Shown here: positions 2,255-10,366 of the stretch, one piece after another | How the letters are laid out: the number at the start of each line of letters is the position of its first letter | How positions within the stretch are numbered: position 1 is the first letter of the stretch | Assembly (NCBI GenBank): GCA_964019335.1 | Contig: OZ025652.1 | Span: 124,001 to 188,000 of the forward strand | DNA from: Diplonema japonicum | Taxonomy: Eukaryota; Protista; Euglenozoa: Diplonemea | Direction of reading: 5' to 3' | Length of the DNA stretch: 64,000 nt | Translations under genes and position numbers: made by a program | Notes under the pieces: model-generated | The model's input: the letters and a program-made list of their open reading frames with translations, nothing else | What the model was told of the DNA's origin: nothing | Databases searched by the model: none

Positions 2255-4041
2255 CCATCTACCAATGAGCGTCTTTACAGAGACGATTTGAAAAAAAATC
2301 TTTTGCGCAAAGGGCTTTCAATGCAATACGGCCCGGCCACTTCTTGCAGCCGGGGTCCTGCGCGGGAAATATGAAAAATATAAACTAAATGCTGCCCTAA
2401 CTTAACAAGAAAAAGAAAAAAGAAAAAAAAACGCCAAACCAAATTTACCCTTAAAAATCACTTCAAAAAAGGGCACCCAGAAAGAGGCCGGTAGAGGACA
2501 TTATGAGTGATGGTAGCACTGATGGCTCATCCCTATTATGCAATTTTGGTACGGACAGTGATTCTGATACGAATTCAACCGATTCCGAGTCACAGCAGGG
2601 TGATTGGACGGCAAAGCCGGAGCAGTTGGAAGGCATCCGGTCCGTGAAGATCGGAATCCTTGTGGACCCTGTTTTAACATCAGAGGCTCAACGCCATTCC
2701 ATATATTCTCCCAAATGCTCGCCCCAAACGTTATTTGGGTCATAATTTCGAACAATGTGGCAAATGCGGCTAAAAAAGGTGTTTCCCTGGATCTCAATGC
2801 TGCTTCTTTGCGTACCTTCCTAGGTGTCCTTTTGTCGATGGACTAGGATATCAAGCCAGATTATTCTGACTACTGGCGCACAGGATCCACGCCTCTCAAC
2901 CACACCCCTGGGTACGCCACCGTCATGTCAAGAGACCGCTTTTTGACTATTCTGGGAAATCTGTGTTTCCACAGCGAAACAAACAAGCGTGCTGACTTCT
3001 ACCTATCGCAAAGGCCTCCCGGAGATCACGGATGCCCCAAAGAAGCGAGGCTGCAAGCCCAAGGACACGCATCCTGTGGGGACACCCAGTTCCACCAGCA
3101 CGTGAGCATCCTTTGCACCACAACGTGGCATGACATCAAGCCTGTGCGCTTTCTGTCGACGTTGGATGTTCTGGTGAAGTCAAATTTGACGTGTCGGCCA
3201 AAAGAGAATGAAAGCCGGAAAGGACATCCCGCTCCCCACCAAGTGCATATTTACAACACCGCAATGGGCGGAACCGACGCTGGGTGACGCTGTGACAAAA
3301 CGCCATAAACGCACCCTTATGACTTCGAAGTGGCCCCTGAAAGTATTTTCGTACTTGTTAGATAAATCTCTGGCAAATGCTTGGCTTGTTTGGAAAGAAG
3401 CATTGCCCCCTGAGTACGAACGACAGTGGATTCACGCCTTTCAAAGAGGCAGTCATCGAAGGGCTACTAGGGAGGCTGTCTAAACAACAGCTAAAGTCAA
3501 CTACAGAGCAGGCTGCCCCAATACCATGCCCCGAAACACAAAACGAGTGCCCTGAGACCCCAATGCACCGCGACAGTACCTTCTGGGACCATTTCCCCGA
3601 AAAAGTAGCGCAACGTGCGGTGCAAGCATTGCAAGTCGAAAAGACCCCTATTTCAGTGTTCAGCCTGCTTGGTACAACTTTGCGTGACTCCGTGCATCAA
3701 AGACTACCACCTTGCCGGGGATACCCCCCAGAAACCCCTCTCGGGGTCAAAAAAGAAGTCCCCCAGCCCTGGGGCACGTACGAACCGCGTCAAGAAGGCC
3801 TTAAATAGGTTTTTATAGAATTTTACAGTCGATTCTTTTTGACTTGTTTTTTGTACCCCTCTCGGGCACTTCAAGAACGATATTTTTGACATGTTGTGGG
3901 GGTGGGCACCCTCTCTCTAGAATTGGGACATCTGGAGGCATTTCCGGGGGCATATAGCCCCGGCGTTGCGCTAGAATAGTTTTTTTTTGAGGTTTTGAAA
4001 ATTTACCCCCTGGTGGGCAAAAATGGTCCGTTGGTAGATGG
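2255..4041 (+). mobile_element. Non-autonomous piggyBac DNA transposon, 1787 bp, TTAA target sites at 2251-2254 and 4042-4045
   Basis: Left end TTAA|CCATCTACCAA and right end TTGGTAGATGG|TTAA form a perfect 11-bp TIR; transposase remnants lie inside. Confidence 0.93.
2503..3818 (+). pseudogene. Disrupted piggyBac (PGBD-type) transposase
   Basis: Acidic N-terminus, LRTFLGVLLSM, stop at 2844-2846, DYW, MSRDRFLTILGNLCF, WHDIKPVRFLST, YNTAMGGTD, KWPLKVFSYLLD..LANAW and a C-terminal Cys-rich RCKHC..QCSACLVQLCVTPCIKDYH. These are spread over three frames, and the central DDD core appears deleted. Confidence 0.9.
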
Positions 4042-4512
4042 TTAAATTTCTTTCTTTAAAAAGAAGGCGGTTTAAGGGCAAATCCCACTTGAGGACCACC
4101 CTTGGGGGTCTATGTTCCGGTACCGGTCTAGCTCTTCCTGCGAAAGCGGACACTCGTACAGCTGGTGTCGTAGCTATTCTGTGCAGCGATTCCGTGTTCT
4201 GAACTACGGCCGTGCATACATCGCACTCAAGCTGTTGGGACTATCCCCACGGATGGCTCGAGTCACTCTTCGCCTTCTCTTCCTTCCATAGTCTAGGGGT
4301 TGACTCTTGTCTCCTTTCCTTCGTTTCCCGCATTGGGCCTTTGAAAAAAAAAAAAAAAAAAAAAAGAAGGTATTTAGGGCGGCTTATTGTGTTCAAATAA
4401 AAGGAATCGTATCGCTGCCCCAGCTAGCGCATTTTCTTTCTTTGTTGCAACACGCGAAAAAAAAAATTATAAAAAGGGGTGCGTTAAAAGAGGGGGACAA
4501 AAAAAAAAAACC

Positions 4513-7500
4513 TCAGATCCTCCTAATCCAGCCAGGGAGGCCCCTGGGAATGATCTCGGGGATGTCTGTAGCAACGCAAGCCCAGGTGGTGTCTGGGACG
4601 CCTCTGTACACCATGTCGCCGATCAGCTGTGCGTGCTCTGGGATGGCCCAGACGAGGGAGCGGAGAAAGCGGGTCTTCATCATGGGTACGGGAAGCCAGT
4701 GCACAATAAATGGAAGTGAGACACGCAGTATGTGCTGCTTGTCGATGGGCATAGGCTCACTGGGCACTGACGGCGGGAAGTTCAATAGCGCGTCCTTGTC
4801 CCCTGTCGTGAAGGGGTAAGCCCCACCCTTCCCCAGCTTTGTGAGGTCATAGTTGTCCCACTCTGTCTTGCCTACCACGTGCTTGTCCAGCAGCTCCTCC
4901 ATCGACTTCGAGTTGTATGTCTCCCACAACGTTCCGATCAGTTTCTTCTGAATCGCCAGGTTGAAGCCCTTCCTCAGCATCCCATTCAGGTTCTCCTCCT
5001 CCCAGTCCATGTGCTTGTCACTGTACGGCACCGCGTCATTCAACGCTTCACTCACTCTCTTCAAGACGACAACCAGTTCCAGCTTGTCCTCGGTGGTCTT
5101 CAGCGCCCGGCAGTCGTCCTTTATCTGCTGCTCCAGCTTGTGAAGCACTTCGTGCTGTAGGTACGCATCCTTCGTGCTCAACGGGTGGAACGAGTCAACC
5201 ATTCTGAACAGGATGTTGTCCTCCATGTGCGAGTGCCAGTGCAACACCAGCAAGTGCAGCTCTAATTGCCGCGCGAGACCAGCAGCAAGGTTGCGAACCT
5301 CTTCACTGTCGCTTCCCTCAGCCACCTCGACGACCCTCTTTGCCGTATTCATGAGGTGTGCACCTGATTCGCGAAGTGCTTCATGAGTAAGCTTATTGAA
5401 GGACAGAGGTGCCCACTTGTAGTGGGGTCTCAGCCACCTCTTCTTGGTGAGCCAGTAGATCGTCTGGAAAAACAGCACAACGTTCACCCAGCTGGCAAGA
5501 ACGAGCGAAAAGGCTGTCATGTACTCACACACCATGTAGAAGCCATCGCCCTTCTTGTAAACGACAGCAGACTGGTACACAGCACACGACGCTGCGAGAA
5601 TGTCCGCAGAGAAGCCGAGTGCCCAGAATGAGAAATCAAACTTTAGGCGGAACAGCCAACCAGTGAGACCCGCCAGCCAGAACATAACAATGATGAGGGT
5701 CCAGCCAGCGTAGAAAAGTACATGGGTGGTAGCGGGCACCAGGGCAAGCTGGTTATTGGTCGCGCCAGTGAGAGTAGGCGTCAAGAGGTTGAGCTGGTAA
5801 TGCGCGATCATGATGAGCTGGAGAACAGTGCTCCACATCCCGATAGAGGCACGCGACCTCTCGTCAGACCAGTGGTACTTGATGGAGTGCACGAAAGTGC
5901 AGCCAAATAGCAGAACTGATAGCAATGCAGGAAGACCAAACAAGAACCTTGCGACCTCTGCGTGGTTGGGGTCAATCGTGATCATCGCCAGGGATGCAAC
6001 AAGACAGCCGCCAATGGGCATCAAAATAGCAGGCGTGATGGACTCATCGTCACCCCTGTCGGAGATGAGGGATGCCACCTTCCAGATGAGCAGCAGCTTC
6101 AGCATTCCAGCACCCAACCACAACAAGTCGCGCATGAAATAGTCACCTCCGTCGTCGAGGGCGTAGCTGGGGTTCTTGGAATCCGTCTGCATAAGGATGG
6201 CGAAGATACACAGCGTCATAGGGAAGGCAGCGATGAAGTTGGACTTCACAGGGTGGATGATCTCCTTGCCTATCTTGGAGGTGTGTATGAACAGCTTGGC
6301 AACGAGCAAGATAAGCAGGATGCTGAAGACCGCAACAGCGATGTAGGTAATTGCAAGCCACAAATCTCTGCACCCGTAGTAGGACGCAGTAAGGTCACGG
6401 GAGTACCTCCATGCGAGGGCAAGGCCCGCGATACTAAGCGGCATCATCATGTCAGAGATCTGCACGTACTTGACGGGGTTGAAGCCACGGCGCACGTGGT
6501 CGTCGTTCTTGAAGCGCTTCAGCGGAGCGTCGGCTGCCGTTGCGGGTTGTCCGATCTCGCGGTATGACAGCTTCTCGATATTCTTCAGCGTCGACTCGAA
6601 GTCGTCGGCAAACTCGATAGCCTTCTGGACAAGGGGCTTCTGGTCGATGTGCACCTCGTACACATTAGCACGAACGATGCCTACTTGTTGCATCAAACCA
6701 AAGAACCAACATCCCAGGCAGAAATCGAAAAATGCTTCCATCGCAGCGGGCACAGCCAAACACCCCAGAACGGTTGCCCCTGCAATGGACTCACCATTGA
6801 TGAGGAGCATGCCTGCTGTGATCGAGAAGCAGAACCCTACGAAGGTAGCGAATTGCTTCGGAGGGCCGTTGCGAAGGTCTTCTTTGAGGAAGGAGGTGGC
6901 GGCCATGGCAAGGGAACCGCAAGGGGAGAAGAAAGCGCCACCCCAGAAGCGGATGGCGAAGTCAAGGGCCATGCCGAGGGCAAGCCAAGCGGCCCATGTC
7001 TTCTCACGCCAGATGATACAGATGATGCAGGCAACGACCATCTGGAAGGCAATGGCTCTTACAGGGTAAATATTAACAGTATGGGGAAAGAACAAAAAGG
7101 ACGAGCGCATAGGCTCCTTGCGGGAGAGGTCGTCGGACTTCCATGCGGAGGCGGCAACGCTGGGGGGCGCGACACCTAAGCGGGTGTACAGTTCACCAGA
7201 CTTCTCTAGCTTGACGACATCTTCGCAGCCACCGACGTAATCACCACCAATAAAGACAATGGGGACCGTCTTGTGCTCAGTAGCCTCCTCTGCTGCGCTT
7301 CTGATGTCACCTCCTGCACTGATCTTGTCGCACTGGAACACCGCGACATCGGATGTAGCACGTACAAGGATGTCCACCGCCCTGTTGCAGAATCCACATG
7401 TGCTCTTCGCCACCACCACCACCTTGTTGTTCTTCAGCGCCGCTTGATAGCCTTCAACAGAAGGATCGCTCACATCTGGCACAGTCGTGTTACCATACGG

Positions 7501-7518
7501 GCTTTGCATCTTCTCCAT
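4513..7518 (-). CDS. Multidomain membrane protein: glutaredoxin + DUF4395 + TDT/SLAC1 (TehA/Ssu1-like) channel + hemerythrin-like HHE domain (~1001 aa, no intron seen)
   Basis: Grx: TCGFC, HKTVPIVFIGGDYVGGCED. DUF4395: DFAIRF, GPPKQFA, EAFFDFCLGC. TDT: PLSIAGLALAW, EIIHPVKSNFIAAFP, FSFWALGF. Hemerythrin: THEALR, HWHSHMEDNILF, QHEVLH, KHMDWEE. Start placed at MEKMQ, just after an AG preceded by a T-rich tract. Confidence 0.88.
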   Translation of the reverse strand: MEKMQSPYGNTTVPDVSDPSVEGYQAALKNNKVVVVAKSTCGFCNRAVDILVRATSDVAVFQCDKISAGGDIRSAAEEATEHKTVPIVFIGGDYVGGCEDVVKLEKSGELYTRLGVAPPSVAASAWKSDDLSRKEPMRSSFLFFPHTVNIYPVRAIAFQMVVACIICIIWREKTWAAWLALGMALDFAIRFWGGAFFSPCGSLAMAATSFLKEDLRNGPPKQFATFVGFCFSITAGMLLINGESIAGATVLGCLAVPAAMEAFFDFCLGCWFFGLMQQVGIVRANVYEVHIDQKPLVQKAIEFADDFESTLKNIEKLSYREIGQPATAADAPLKRFKNDDHVRRGFNPVKYVQISDMMMPLSIAGLALAWRYSRDLTASYYGCRDLWLAITYIAVAVFSILLILLVAKLFIHTSKIGKEIIHPVKSNFIAAFPMTLCIFAILMQTDSKNPSYALDDGGDYFMRDLLWLGAGMLKLLLIWKVASLISDRGDDESITPAILMPIGGCLVASLAMITIDPNHAEVARFLFGLPALLSVLLFGCTFVHSIKYHWSDERSRASIGMWSTVLQLIMIAHYQLNLLTPTLTGATNNQLALVPATTHVLFYAGWTLIIVMFWLAGLTGWLFRLKFDFSFWALGFSADILAASCAVYQSAVVYKKGDGFYMVCEYMTAFSLVLASWVNVVLFFQTIYWLTKKRWLRPHYKWAPLSFNKLTHEALRESGAHLMNTAKRVVEVAEGSDSEEVRNLAAGLARQLELHLLVLHWHSHMEDNILFRMVDSFHPLSTKDAYLQHEVLHKLEQQIKDDCRALKTTEDKLELVVVLKRVSEALNDAVPYSDKHMDWEEENLNGMLRKGFNLAIQKKLIGTLWETYNSKSMEELLDKHVVGKTEWDNYDLTKLGKGGAYPFTTGDKDALLNFPPSVPSEPMPIDKQHILRVSLPFIVHWLPVPMMKTRFLRSLVWAIPEHAQLIGDMVYRGVPDTTWACVATDIPEIIPRGLPGWIRRI

Positions 7519-7520
7519 TA

Positions 7521-7600
7521 CTTGGATGAAAAAAGTTGGTGGCGAAGTAATAAAATAAAAAAAATAAAAGAAAACTTCAAAGTAAAAAAGAAAATGGAAA
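7521..7600 (-). promoter_or_regulatory. Probable spliced-leader trans-splice acceptor (T-rich tract + AG) for the Grx-TDT gene; similar tracts precede many genes
   Basis: Minus strand ...ttttttattttattacttcgccaccaacttttttcatccaAG immediately upstream of ATG 7518; function inferred from euglenozoan biology. Confidence 0.5.
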
Positions 7601-7919
7601 GTATACATTGCGCACCACATGTTCTGTGAGCCAGTGTAGAAAGAGAAAAAAAAAAGAGAAAAAAAGAGGGAAAAAGAAATTCAGGGTGTGGCCAAGATAA
7701 AAAAGAAACCGAGAGGAGTAACTTTTGTATGTTAATGGTGTGTGTGGCGTGGGAAAAAGAAATAAAGAAGAAATAAAAAAAAGCAGAGAGTATTTTGGGT
7801 TTCGTGGTTTTTTTTTTTTTATTCTTTTTTTTCTTTTCCTGGGGTATTCATTCTTTTTGGGTTCGGAATTTCACAGATGCGGGGCTATTCAGTTTTGTAT
7901 ATAGTGCTTGCTGACAATC

Positions 7920-8548
7920 TTAGTCATCATCGTCCTCAAGGTCGAGACCCTTCTTCAAGGCCCAGTCGACGAACTCGTTGAAGAGCACCTGGCCACCGCC
8001 GTTCTTGTCAATCTGCTTGAAGGTGGCTGAGGGGTCTTCGATCTTCACACCCCACTTCTCGATGAGCGGGGTGGCCTGCGTGAACTCCTTCTCGTCCACC
8101 CTGCGGTCGTCACCAGTGTCGATCATCTCGAACATCTGCCACAGCTCAAACATCTGGCGAAGCGACACCTGTTGGGGGAGGAGATGGGGATGGGGATCGG
8201 GATGGGGGTTTCGTTTTTTGTAAAAAGAACACAACACACCATCAGAAGACGGAACTCAGATCTCGTGACATAATCGTCAGAGTGCGGGGTGTGCGAGGGG
8301 GCCGTGTCCTTCACAGCGTTGAAGGCACGCAGCATGGCAGGCTTGCAGTCGAACAAGTCGTCCGCCTTCAGCACGTCCCTCACACCCTTGTCAACCTCAG
8401 CGAGACTCAGGTACCCGTTGCCGTTCATGTCCATCCCGTTGAAGATCTGGCGACGCTTCTGCTTGTCCTTCGCAGACCTGCTGGATGGCAGCTTCGCACT
8501 GAGCTCAGCCCAGTCGATCTTCCTGTCTCCGCCACGAAGAGTAGACAT
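7920..8548 (-). CDS. Flagellar calcium-binding protein (FCaBP-like), copy 2, complete, 185 aa; intron 8169..8239
   Basis: Same as copy 1, ending WALKKGLDLEDDDD*; spliced length is 558 nt. Confidence 0.9.
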
Positions 8549-8670
8549 CTTTCTTTGAACCTGTGATGCCTCTGTTAGCAACATTGGGTTTTGAAGTATT
8601 AAATATAAACACTGTTTGATTTGAAACCAAAGATAGATAAAGGGTGTCTCTGCCTTATAACTCTCGGTCT

Positions 8671-10366
8671 CTATCTCCTGCCGCCTTTGCCGCCTAGGCC
8701 GCCCATCATGGCAGCAAGGTTCCCCAGGCCTCCCTTTCCTCCCTTTCCTCCTAAGCCTCCCATCATGCCCTGCATCTGCTGGGCGAGCTGTGCCATGTCT
8801 GGCATGCCTCCAGCACCGCCACCAGGACCTCCGCCACCAGTCAGTCCTTTCATCATATTTGCTAGGCCTGCTTGCCCTCCTAACTTCTTCAATACCTGTG
8901 GGTTTACAGCTTTGGCAAGCTGCTGCATCTGCGACTGAGAACCGTGTGTCCCTCTCGACATGGAGGCGGGGTCTTTGGCCATTTGTTTGAAGTTCAGCTT
9001 CCCCATCTTCTTCACCATCTCTTCGAATTTCACATAAGCTTTCAGTAGGTCCTGCACATCCATGGGTGACCTTCCTGCACCTTTGCTTATTCTTGCTATT
9101 CTCTCTGGCGTCATGATCTTCTTCACCTGCGAGTGGTCCAGCTCCTTGTCGCACATGGAGTCCATTAATGTCATGAACACTTTCAGCCGGTTTGACTGCT
9201 CTGCCTCCTGACCCTTTAGCAGGCCTTTGGGCATGCCCGGCAACATGTCCATGAACTGTCCCATGGGGCCCAAGCTGAGGATATTTTGCAGATGTTCGTA
9301 CATGTCTCTCAGTGTGAAAACCCCATCCGCAAGTCTTTGGTAGATCTCTGATTTGTGGTCGATGCCAGCATCCTCTAATTTTTCCATAAGGCCCGCGAAG
9401 TCACCCATTCCCAGCAGCGAAGAGAGGAAGCTCTTAGGCTGGAATGCTTTGAAATCTTCGAAGTGCTCCCCTGTGCCTATGAATATTATGGGGGACTTTG
9501 TCGCTGCCACTGCAGACAGTGCACCACCACCCTTCGCGTGCCCGTCGAGCTTCGTGATGATGACAGACCCAACCTTCACCTTTTCTTTGAAGGCCAAGGC
9601 CTGGTCCTGCGCTGCTTGGCCAATAGCAGAGTCCATCACGAAAATTATATCATCCGGCTCCGTAGCGTCAGATATTTGCTTCATCTCATCGAACAGCGAA
9701 GTCTCTTGCTTGTGACGTCCTGTGGCAATGGGTGTTGTGGTTGAGGGCACACCTGAAGTATCGACAACAATAATTTCGCAGCCGTCTTCCTTGAACTTTG
9801 CGACCCCTTCCCTGGCAATCACAACAGGGTCCGTCTCTGTTAGGGAACCGTAGAATCGTAATTTCGATTTCGCTGCGTTCTGCTTCAACTGGTCGTAAGC
9901 ACCTGCACGGAAGGTATCCGCACACACTAGACCCACCTTCCATCCCTTCCTTTGGTAGTACAGCGCGTACTTTGTACACGTAGTTGTTTTGCCGCTGCCC
10001 TGCAGACCCACTGTCATTACAACGTTGGGGCGGCCCCTCACAGGCACGTACGGCTTCGTGCCAGGGTCGAGCAGGCGGAGCATCTCTGCGAAAACAGCGT
10101 TCTGCACCAGCTTCTTCCTGTTGTAAATTTGGCGAGAGAAAAGAAAACTCCGACGCATACTTTCCTTGGCTGCCATCGTCAAGCGTCACCTTAGTCTTCA
10201 CTGCATTCCGGAACTGCCCCACAAGCTTCACGTTCACATCCGCCATCAACAGCGCCCGCGAGATGTCAGCAAGCATTGCATCGATAGCCGCGTCATCGAT
10301 AGCAGTGTTGCGGGAGAGGTTAGAGAGGGCAGTGCTGATCTGCCCTCCAAGTTCTGCCAAAACCAT
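8671..10366 (-). CDS. SRP54: Signal recognition particle 54 kDa subunit; introns 10118..10160 (43 nt) and 9720..9752 (33 nt, in frame)
   Basis: MVLAELGGQI, GLQGSGKTTT, DTFRAGA, DTSG|RHKQE restored after splicing, TKLDGHAKGGGALS, Met/Gly-rich M domain. Confidence 0.96.

Follow-up and report, generated by a model that had tools for sequence, protein, structure and literature searches.

Knowledge of the channels and transporters of the TDT/SLAC1 family (TC 2.A.16) comes chiefly from plant guard cells, in which kinases control them, and from bacterial TehA. Characterised members handle tellurite (TehA) and sulfite (Ssu1) and include the malate permease Mae1, and plant SLAC1 is controlled by phosphorylation of its disordered termini. 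Here we describe a gene on the minus strand of a stretch of 64,000 nucleotides from the diplonemid Diplonema japonicum (assembly GCA_964019335.1, contig OZ025652.1, positions 124,001 to 188,000; the whole stretch is called the window below, and positions are counted from its first letter). The gene occupies positions 4513-7518 and encodes a single protein in which a TDT/SLAC1 domain is combined with other modules in the order, from the N to the C terminus, of a glutaredoxin (Grx), a DUF4395 membrane domain, a conserved linker, the TDT/SLAC1 domain, a hemerythrin-like bundle and a helical C-terminal tail.

The channel part of this protein is like that of the Haemophilus TehA homologue and of plant SLAC1, SLAH1 and SLAH3, in that residues 355-690 match both the Pfam family PF03595 and the TehA, SLAH and SLAC1 structures and contain about ten predicted transmembrane (TM) helices. 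The termini are different from those of SLAC1, consisting in the fusion of a folded Grx-DUF4395-linker unit on one side and of the hemerythrin-like bundle plus tail on the other. The bundle resembles the hemerythrin domains of the sensors FBXL5, plant BRUTUS/BTSL and DcrH-Hr and the proteins PF0695 (3cax), NMB1532 (2p0n) and the Rv2633c homologue (6q09), with which it shares four helices and the ligand pattern H/HxxxE/H/HxxxE, the structural matches having Z-scores of 10.9-15.6. As in FBXL5, BRUTUS and DcrH-Hr, the bundle is attached to an effector, but here the effector is an ion-channel domain joined directly at its last TM helix; the fusion further differs from the hemerythrin sensors in having an extra conserved C-terminal helical sub-domain, plus an insertion of 64 residues in a diplonemid-like clade, and its metal site is a predicted one. 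At the other end, the CxxC, TVP and GG motifs and the position beside a cysteine-bearing partner are shared with class-I glutaredoxins and with Grx fusions such as thioredoxin-glutathione reductase, plant APS reductase and the peroxiredoxin-Grx hybrids, whereas the partner in the present case is the integral-membrane DUF4395 domain and not a soluble enzyme. A likeness to VKOR-Trx and DsbB is one of design only: a four-helix membrane bundle with a CxxC at a helix N terminus is joined to a thioredoxin-fold domain, but the DUF4395 fold matches generic bundles only, and its cysteines would, by the parity of the TM helices, be cytosolic instead of facing an oxidising compartment.

The extent of the gene was established with contigs from four public runs, aligned over positions 3600-8600. 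The minus-strand open reading frame (ORF) is uninterrupted from 4513 to 7620, and translation gives 1035 residues from its first ATG and 1001 residues from the ATG at 7518. One contig spans 4378-7521 and another 4519-7521, both without gaps, nor was a joint or a shared contig end reported anywhere within the ORF for the four runs. It was found that the contigs of all four runs cease to match the genome at exactly 7521, beyond which they carry 15-24 extra, non-genomic letters. At this point the genomic sequence reads ...ttttttcatccaag, followed directly by taATG, that is, a pyrimidine tract, AG, TA and ATG. The AG at 7521-7522 is therefore probably a spliced-leader acceptor, an assignment made from these features and not from a reading of the leader letters themselves. 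This contig end, at an AG 2 nucleotides short of the ATG at 7518, fixes the start codon and speaks against a division of the ORF by trans-splicing. The ATG at 7620 was considered as the start and rejected, as it lies upstream of the trans-splice acceptor and apparently in the 3' untranslated region (UTR) of the neighbouring gene; the protein is therefore taken to have 1001 residues.

The runs have several RNA-like properties: neighbouring genes are about 1000-fold apart in depth, one contig skips a 71-nucleotide intron next door, loose ends of poly(A) or poly(T) are present, contigs halt at gene boundaries, and the non-genomic 5' extension is common to them. Complete transcriptome-derived ORFs of equal length were found in related species. 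Taken together, these results show that the locus is a real, expressed gene that yields one polypeptide from one intron-free, probably trans-spliced mRNA. This agrees with an earlier sequence-only reading of the window, which had claimed one uninterrupted ORF of about 1001 residues and proposed a check for one continuous mRNA: the ORF is present, it has collinear homologues, and the contig of 4378-7521 spans the whole of it. The splitting of the ORF by trans-splicing, named in that reading as a possible refutation, is not supported. The alternative that the long ORF is an artefact, in which separate genes were joined by misassembly or the frame is divided among several mRNAs by trans-splicing at internal sites, would accord with the fact that euglenozoan genes are arranged in polycistrons processed by trans-splicing, and the first ATG of the frame (7620) is indeed unused. 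However, the two gapless contigs contain no internal joint, and the equal-length ORFs of related species and more than 40 independent full-length proteins with an identical module order speak against it, so that we regard such an artefact as extremely improbable.

The domain composition was evaluated by a Pfam run on the 1001-residue protein, in which the scores were compared with the curated cut-offs. Glutaredoxin, DUF4395 and SLAC1 were recovered above their cut-offs, and the hemerythrin-like domain was recovered by way of homologues and a fold model. In NCBIfam, matches to a eukaryotic-type glutaredoxin and to the 'tdt' transporter were obtained, both under the strict cut-offs of that collection. 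All four modules that had been recognised from the letters alone thus hold in the light of Pfam, close homologues, structure models and profile searches of the PDB, and the positions assigned at the time to CGFC, EAFFDFCLGC, the TDT unit and the H/HxxxE/H/HxxxE pattern were found to be correct on re-mapping, as was the presence of the TVP and GG motifs. Two conserved parts had escaped that reading, namely the linker (residues 281-354) and the C-terminal helical sub-domain (residues 930-1001). With 14 full-length homologues and 188 representatives at E <= 1e-30, the feature is far beyond chance.

The N-terminal domain matches Pfam PF00462 (Glutaredoxin) over residues 33-95 (E 4e-10, 40.1 bits against a cut-off of 22.9), and its best sequence match in the PDB is 2myg, 'Dithiol glutaredoxin 1' (E 2e-17). 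The motifs C41-G-F-C44, T84-V-P86 and G96-G97 are present, and C41, T84, P86, G96 and G97 are kept in at least 90% of 42 full-length distant eukaryotic members of the family. By sequence, this is a class-I dithiol glutaredoxin and a predicted glutathione-dependent oxidoreductase. The active site is CGFC, with Gly in the second position, in the diplonemid members, and CPFC in most non-diplonemid members (23 of the readable sites). The first cysteine is retained even in members with Ser or Thr in place of the second, which fits a monothiol glutaredoxin mechanism. In the set of 42, conservation of cysteines to 90% or more is confined to C41 and C98 (of the GGC motif) in the glutaredoxin and C267 and C270 in DUF4395. 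This pattern fits a glutaredoxin that may act on the C267/C270 pair. The putative thiol relay from the Grx CxxC to the membrane CxxC that had been proposed earlier agrees with the cysteine conservation. The other elements of that proposal, namely gating, a substrate such as sulfite, nitrite or a metalloid, and O2 sensing, are likewise putative.

The DUF4395 domain matches PF14340 over residues 149-277 with a score of 72.7 bits (cut-off 24.5) and E 5e-20, and 128 of the 130 positions of the profile are aligned. Conserved residues are D186, R190, K221-Q222-F223-A224 and E261, and the motif EAFFDFCLGC ends in the CLGC at 6709-6720. An AlphaFold (AF2) model of DUF4395 plus linker, with a predicted local distance difference test score (pLDDT) of 94.6, has four TM helices, and the Cx[GA]C pair is located in it at the N terminus of a short helix after TM4. 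The motifs Cx[GA]C, PK[QR]FA and LE....Cx[GA]C are common to three bacterial DUF4395 members and to the distant eukaryotic members; as judged from these alignments, the Cx[GA]C pair is a signature of the DUF4395 family, bacteria included. In the 62.5-Mb, 132-contig genome of D. japonicum, this locus holds the sole match found to DUF4395, and the same is true of the TDT domain.

Relatives of DUF4395 outside its own family were sought in several ways. A homology to VKOR or DsbB is not supported, as the fold search returned generic four-helix bundles with a best Z-score of 8.5, and Foldseek with the DUF4395 model gave nothing below E 0.3, a VKOR-like entry appearing at a probability of 0.02. When the domain alone was used as the query, a word-indexed protein search gave no match. 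An alignment of six DUF4395 sequences contained no stretch conserved enough for a pattern scan, and a scan of contigs with a DUF4395 pattern produced 358 pattern matches with no relative among them. Weak, two-stretch matches to YgaP-like_TM (PF11127) were seen in two bacterial DUF4395 proteins (L009:6004-6498 and L011:5920-6357), with Pfam E-values of 0.005 and 0.016. A comparison of DUF4395 with the YgaP-like hairpin in hhalign gave E-values of 0.005 and 0.026 at probabilities of just 7% and 2%, the reversed control being at E 0.1, and a half-versus-half comparison of DUF4395, as for a duplicated hairpin, was no better than its reversed control. In the statistically weak hhalign alignment, the conserved cysteine of the YgaP-like 'GFCPLY' is paired with the first cysteine of Cx[GA]C.

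The bacterial DUF4395 genes were also inspected for conserved gene partners, and none was found in 3 plasmid and 80 actinobacterial loci, nor were sulfur, selenium or arsenic neighbours conserved; therefore, no conclusion on function is drawn from these neighbourhoods. The three plasmid contexts differ from each other (MarR and flavodoxin; cytochrome b, a class-V aminotransferase and metal efflux; a sterol desaturase family protein and phytanoyl-CoA dioxygenase), and the neighbours in the actinobacterial loci depend on the clade (RNase_T exonuclease, MFS transporter, RecQ, MarR, flotillin, Ppx/GppA, ADP-ribosylglycohydrolase, flavodoxin and fatty-acid desaturase). In the pair of loci L010 and L011, the DUF4395 gene of a Spirosoma plasmid is directly beside the genes for the sterol desaturase family protein and phytanoyl-CoA dioxygenase, and that of a Methylobacterium plasmid is directly beside genes for cytochrome b and for copper and heavy-metal efflux. 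This redox and metal neighbourhood of the plasmid genes is not general, as it was not seen as a pattern in the 80 actinobacterial loci.

The linker between DUF4395 and the channel is modelled with pLDDT values of mostly 92-97, decreasing to about 76-85 over its last 20 or so residues. I291, D305, Q324, P325, T327, A329, D330 and K337 are invariant in 15 close homologues, and K334 and K337 are kept in at least 90% of the 42 distant members. The channel domain that follows matches PF03595 (SLAC1/TDT) over residues 355-675 (81.1 bits, with the cut-off at 27.9; E 1e-22) and TIGR00816 'tdt' (E 2.6e-16, 59.9 bits, to be read against a strict NCBIfam subfamily cut-off of 237). A single-sequence search of the PDB with the TDT domain gave nothing relevant, and a profile was needed: with a small TDT-centred profile, TehA (3m72) was matched at E 1e-21, SLAH1 and SLAH3 at about 2e-11, and SLAC1 at 2e-10 to 6e-9. 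The lack of a PDB match for the single sequence and the score below the NCBIfam subfamily cut-off therefore indicate a divergent TDT member. Eight hydropathy segments are clear, and two weaker ones (about residues 357-377 and 558-578) were picked by eye. W632 and F636 on the ninth helix, which may or may not correspond to the gate of TehA and SLAC1, are kept in at least 90% of members.

The ligand pattern of the hemerythrin-like bundle is formed by H712, H762/E766, H789 and H836/E840, encoded within 4999-5385. These six residues are invariant in the 15 close homologues and kept in at least 90% of the 42 distant members, H793 being the sole listed candidate ligand that falls below 90% in the latter. 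Of the 15 close homologues, 13 matched the Pfam family PF01814 at E <= 1, the strongest at 3.5e-9, and 7 of 10 distant members tested passed its cut-off. An AF2 model of residues 690-1001 (pLDDT 87, predicted TM-score 0.87) places the bundle helices at model residues 16-44, 49-88, 94-119 and 123-162. In a VIA structure search of 48,161 chains with this model, the top three matches were all hemerythrin-like (3cax, Z 15.6; 2p0n, Z 15.2; the FBXL5 hemerythrin domain, Z 14.4), followed by lower matches that include the iron-bound HHE protein 6q09 (Z 12.1) and DcrH-Hr 2avk (Z 10.9), with generic bundles at about Z 12. Foldseek alone was weak for this model, and in a language-model atlas residues 700-1001 were nearest to eukaryotic 'hemerythrin-like domain-containing' clusters. 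The agreement of homologue matches, conserved ligands and a confident model supports the hemerythrin assignment, with a candidate metal site.

C-terminal to the bundle, profile positions of about 857-920 are matched by the diplonemid-like proteins only (P0001-P0016 and P0045, in one stretch to 991) and are skipped by all others. In almost every distant full-length member, a second match to the profile, at positions 920-990, covers the tail, which is modelled with a pLDDT above 90 over most of its length. The coordinates of the gene and its parts are collected in Table 1.

Table 1. Coordinates of the fusion gene, its transcript and its protein modules in the window.
Feature	Position	Strand	Residues	Remarks
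3' UTR, about 135 nucleotides	4378..4512	-		Contig X6 record 12 starts at 4378, with 33 further non-genomic letters
Coding sequence	4513..7518	-	1001	TGA stop 4513-4515; no cis-intron; full-length collinear homologues
Conserved C-terminal helical sub-domain	4516..4731	-	930-1001	Ends ...PEIIPRGLPGWIRRI; no Pfam family
Diplonemid-like-clade insertion (64 residues)	4732..4923	-	about 866-929	Between bundle and tail
Hemerythrin-like four-helix bundle	4966..5406	-	705-851	Candidate di-iron ligands H712, H762, E766, H789, H793, H836, E840
TDT/SLAC1-family domain	5449..6456	-	355-690	About 10 TM helices; Pfam, TIGR00816, profile-PDB search, hydropathy
Conserved structured linker	6457..6678	-	281-354	Helix and beta-hairpin leading into channel TM1
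DUF4395 membrane domain	6679..7089	-	144-280	Four TM helices; CLGC 6709-6720; PF14340
Class-I dithiol glutaredoxin	7174..7443	-	26-115	CGFC 7387-7398, TVP 7261-7269, GGC 7225-7233
Probable spliced-leader trans-splice acceptor (AG)	7521..7522	-		2 nucleotides upstream of ATG 7518; contig ends, pyrimidine tract

The fusion is not unique to D. japonicum, contrary to what the sequence-only reading had implied. The 14 full-length homologues have 40-70% identity, the best being a transcriptome ORF at 70%. A HMMER search of 1.84 billion representatives with a family profile yielded 6809 hits at E <= 1e-3, and re-mapping the best 150 hits onto the profile gave about 40 full-length representatives, across algae and protists, with the same module order including the C-terminal tail. 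Among 10 distant members, 9 contained the four Pfam domains at E <= 0.01, the hemerythrin domain in two and the glutaredoxin in one being below the curated cut-off. Besides diplonemids and one prokinetoplastid, the family is present in algae of the green, red and brown groups and in ichthyosporeans, which are unicellular relatives of animals; its members include proteins of Diplonema papillatum ('Glutaredoxin-C1'), the prokinetoplastid Papus ankaliazontas, Porphyridium purpureum ('SLAH3') and Tetrabaena socialis ('Glutaredoxin-C6'), and others from Myrmecia, a pedinophyte, Ostreobium, Raphidocelis, Ectocarpus and the ichthyosporeans Pirum and Creolimax. A record labelled 'Clim' is presumably from Corallochytrium. 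Besides 'Glutaredoxin-C1/C6' and 'SLAH3', the name 'TehA-like permease/glutaredoxin' is in use in databases for the fusion.

When 40 full-length members were placed in a quick maximum-likelihood tree, with two near-duplicate rows (P0162 and P0163) left out, the 15 diplonemid-like proteins formed one clade with a value of 100 in the Shimodaira-Hasegawa-like approximate likelihood-ratio test (SH-aLRT), and this clade was sister to one containing Papus, again with SH-aLRT 100, as is expected for vertical descent within Euglenozoa. Grx-DUF4395 and linker-TDT-hemerythrin-tail also occur as separate proteins, some of which may be fragments, and these separate halves suggest, at the level of sequence, two functional units that were later joined. 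Architectural variants were noted among P0043, P0046, P0050 and P0090, including DUF4395-TDT-hemerythrin without Grx, and some of these may be truncated gene models; the Raphidocelis subcapitata protein (P0043) has two tandem Grx domains and no hemerythrin. A search of the literature found no description of the four-domain fusion, including in a paper on hemerythrin evolution, a review of dinoflagellate genomics and a 2026 review of glutaredoxins. Of the possibility raised earlier that the architecture would prove to be widespread and already characterised, the first half is true, and for the second no characterisation was found in this search. The locus belongs to a variant of the TDT channel family that is widespread and visible in databases but uncharacterised.

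We propose, with moderate confidence and from sequence and structure models, that the protein is a regulated anion channel or transporter with a thiol switch that is reset by the glutaredoxin and a di-iron sensor, both acting through the linker and the tail. In the TehA and SLAC1 structures both termini of the TDT protein are in the cytosol, and DUF4395 has four helices, an even number; because of this parity, the Grx, the polar and cysteine cluster of DUF4395 (the loops with D186, R190, K221, Q222 and E261), the linker and the hemerythrin domain would all be located on the cytosolic face. A count of Lys plus Arg, with 9 on the proposed inner side and 2 on the outer, gives weak support for this orientation. 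The Cx[GA]C pair of DUF4395 would be a thiol switch at the membrane interface, with glutathione (or trypanothione) serving the fused glutaredoxin in the oxidation or re-reduction of its cysteines. The status of O2, NO or iron would be signalled by the di-iron hemerythrin domain, which follows the last pore helix directly, and the switch and the sensor would both act on the channel via the conserved linker and tail. A further-reaching form of this proposal, in which DUF4395 is an unrecognised membrane-embedded thiol redox module with a dedicated glutaredoxin and the channel is gated directly by thiol state and by O2, NO or iron sensors, is possible but distinctly more doubtful; in that form, redox and oxygen status would be coupled to anion flux directly, without a kinase, in protists and algae.

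Several points weigh against this proposal. The match to PF01814 on the D. japonicum sequence alone (residues 731-846) has 14.9 bits, below the cut-off of 25.3, and the profile alignment to TehA stops at TehA residue 248, before the TM9 that bears the gate Phe. The family profile contained the Grx domain, and the sample of relatives is therefore biased toward Grx-bearing proteins. The four runs carry no RNA label on their records, so that their RNA nature is deduced from the properties given above. In addition, the glutaredoxin of known Grx fusions is mostly the reductant of a catalytic partner and not a regulator, which favours a different account of the protein: the glutaredoxin and DUF4395 together would make up a membrane reductase or sulfur-transfer unit that depends on glutathione and processes an oxyanion (selenite, tellurite, arsenate or thiosulfate/sulfite species) where the TDT pore opens to the cytosol. 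The pore would import the substrate or export the product, and the hemerythrin would be a modulator or second redox centre. Glutaredoxin recycles the catalytic cysteine of its partner in plant APS reductase, in peroxiredoxin-Grx hybrids and in thioredoxin-glutathione reductase, and the last of these was among the matches of the PDB sequence search. Such a unit would suit a family in which TehA handles tellurite and Ssu1 sulfite, R190, K221, D186 and E261 adjoin the cysteine pair in the model and could bind an anion, and Grx-DUF4395 seems to exist without the channel. DUF4395 also has the weak likeness described above to the hairpin of YgaP, a membrane-bound rhodanese; however, this link is not significant, no sulfur, selenium or arsenic genes are conserved beside the bacterial DUF4395 genes of the 3 plasmid and 80 actinobacterial loci, and the literature yielded two passing mentions of DUF4395 and no catalytic precedent. 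On balance, we consider the coupling of an enzyme to a transporter unlikely.

The modules would also be compatible with an iron-homeostasis device, in which the hemerythrin domain senses iron, as it does in FBXL5 and BRUTUS, the CGFC glutaredoxin binds a [2Fe-2S] cluster, and the two control the flux of a malate-like dicarboxylate or another iron-linked anion. Pro-less class-I glutaredoxins bind such a cluster and the CPFC form generally does not, and the diplonemid active site has Gly in place of Pro. The TDT family includes the malate permease Mae1, and the FBXL5 domain was among the three best structural matches of the bundle. For the hemerythrin-like domains of BRUTUS, di-iron binding together with iron-sensing and redox properties has been reported (PMC12022348). 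However, most non-diplonemid members have CPFC, and the Fe-S idea therefore cannot be a mechanism of the whole family; we regard this device as improbable, and retain the regulated channel with a thiol switch and a di-iron sensor as the preferred reading.

The genes around the fusion were also examined. The upstream neighbour at 7565-8560 on the minus strand encodes a protein with EF-hands like those of flagellar calcium-binding proteins (Pfam FCaBP_EF-hand, E 1e-22). Its contigs skip a 71-nucleotide intron at 8165-8235, and their depth exceeds that of the fusion gene about 1000-fold. Judging from a loose poly(T) end at 7565, which corresponds to poly(A) on the minus strand, the mRNA of this neighbour appears to end about 43 nucleotides before the acceptor of the fusion gene. 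Next to it, at 8671-10182 on the same strand, is an SRP54 gene with the GTPase and signal-peptide-binding domains and a long Gly/Met-rich C-terminal tail; its orientation, shared with the two genes downstream, is consistent with a polycistronic unit. On the other side, three ORFs in different frames overlap each other at 2925-3808 on the plus strand, and the first of them matches the piggyBac-type family DDE_Tnp_1_7 exactly at its cut-off (22.4 bits, E 9e-5), and over 3600-4100 the contig depth is very high, with variant letters. This locus looks like a decayed multi-copy transposon.

The fusion represents a conserved eukaryotic branch of the TDT family with folded redox and metal domains on either side of the channel domain, and its architecture corrects the database names 'Glutaredoxin-C1/C6' and 'SLAH3', which are misleading. 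If the proposed mechanism is true, it would give a first functional context to DUF4395, a family of bacteria and eukaryotes, and an ion channel would join the short list of effectors under hemerythrin-like sensors. The protein would also offer a tractable single-polypeptide system for the study of how redox state and oxygen control anion flux in marine protists, which are abundant.

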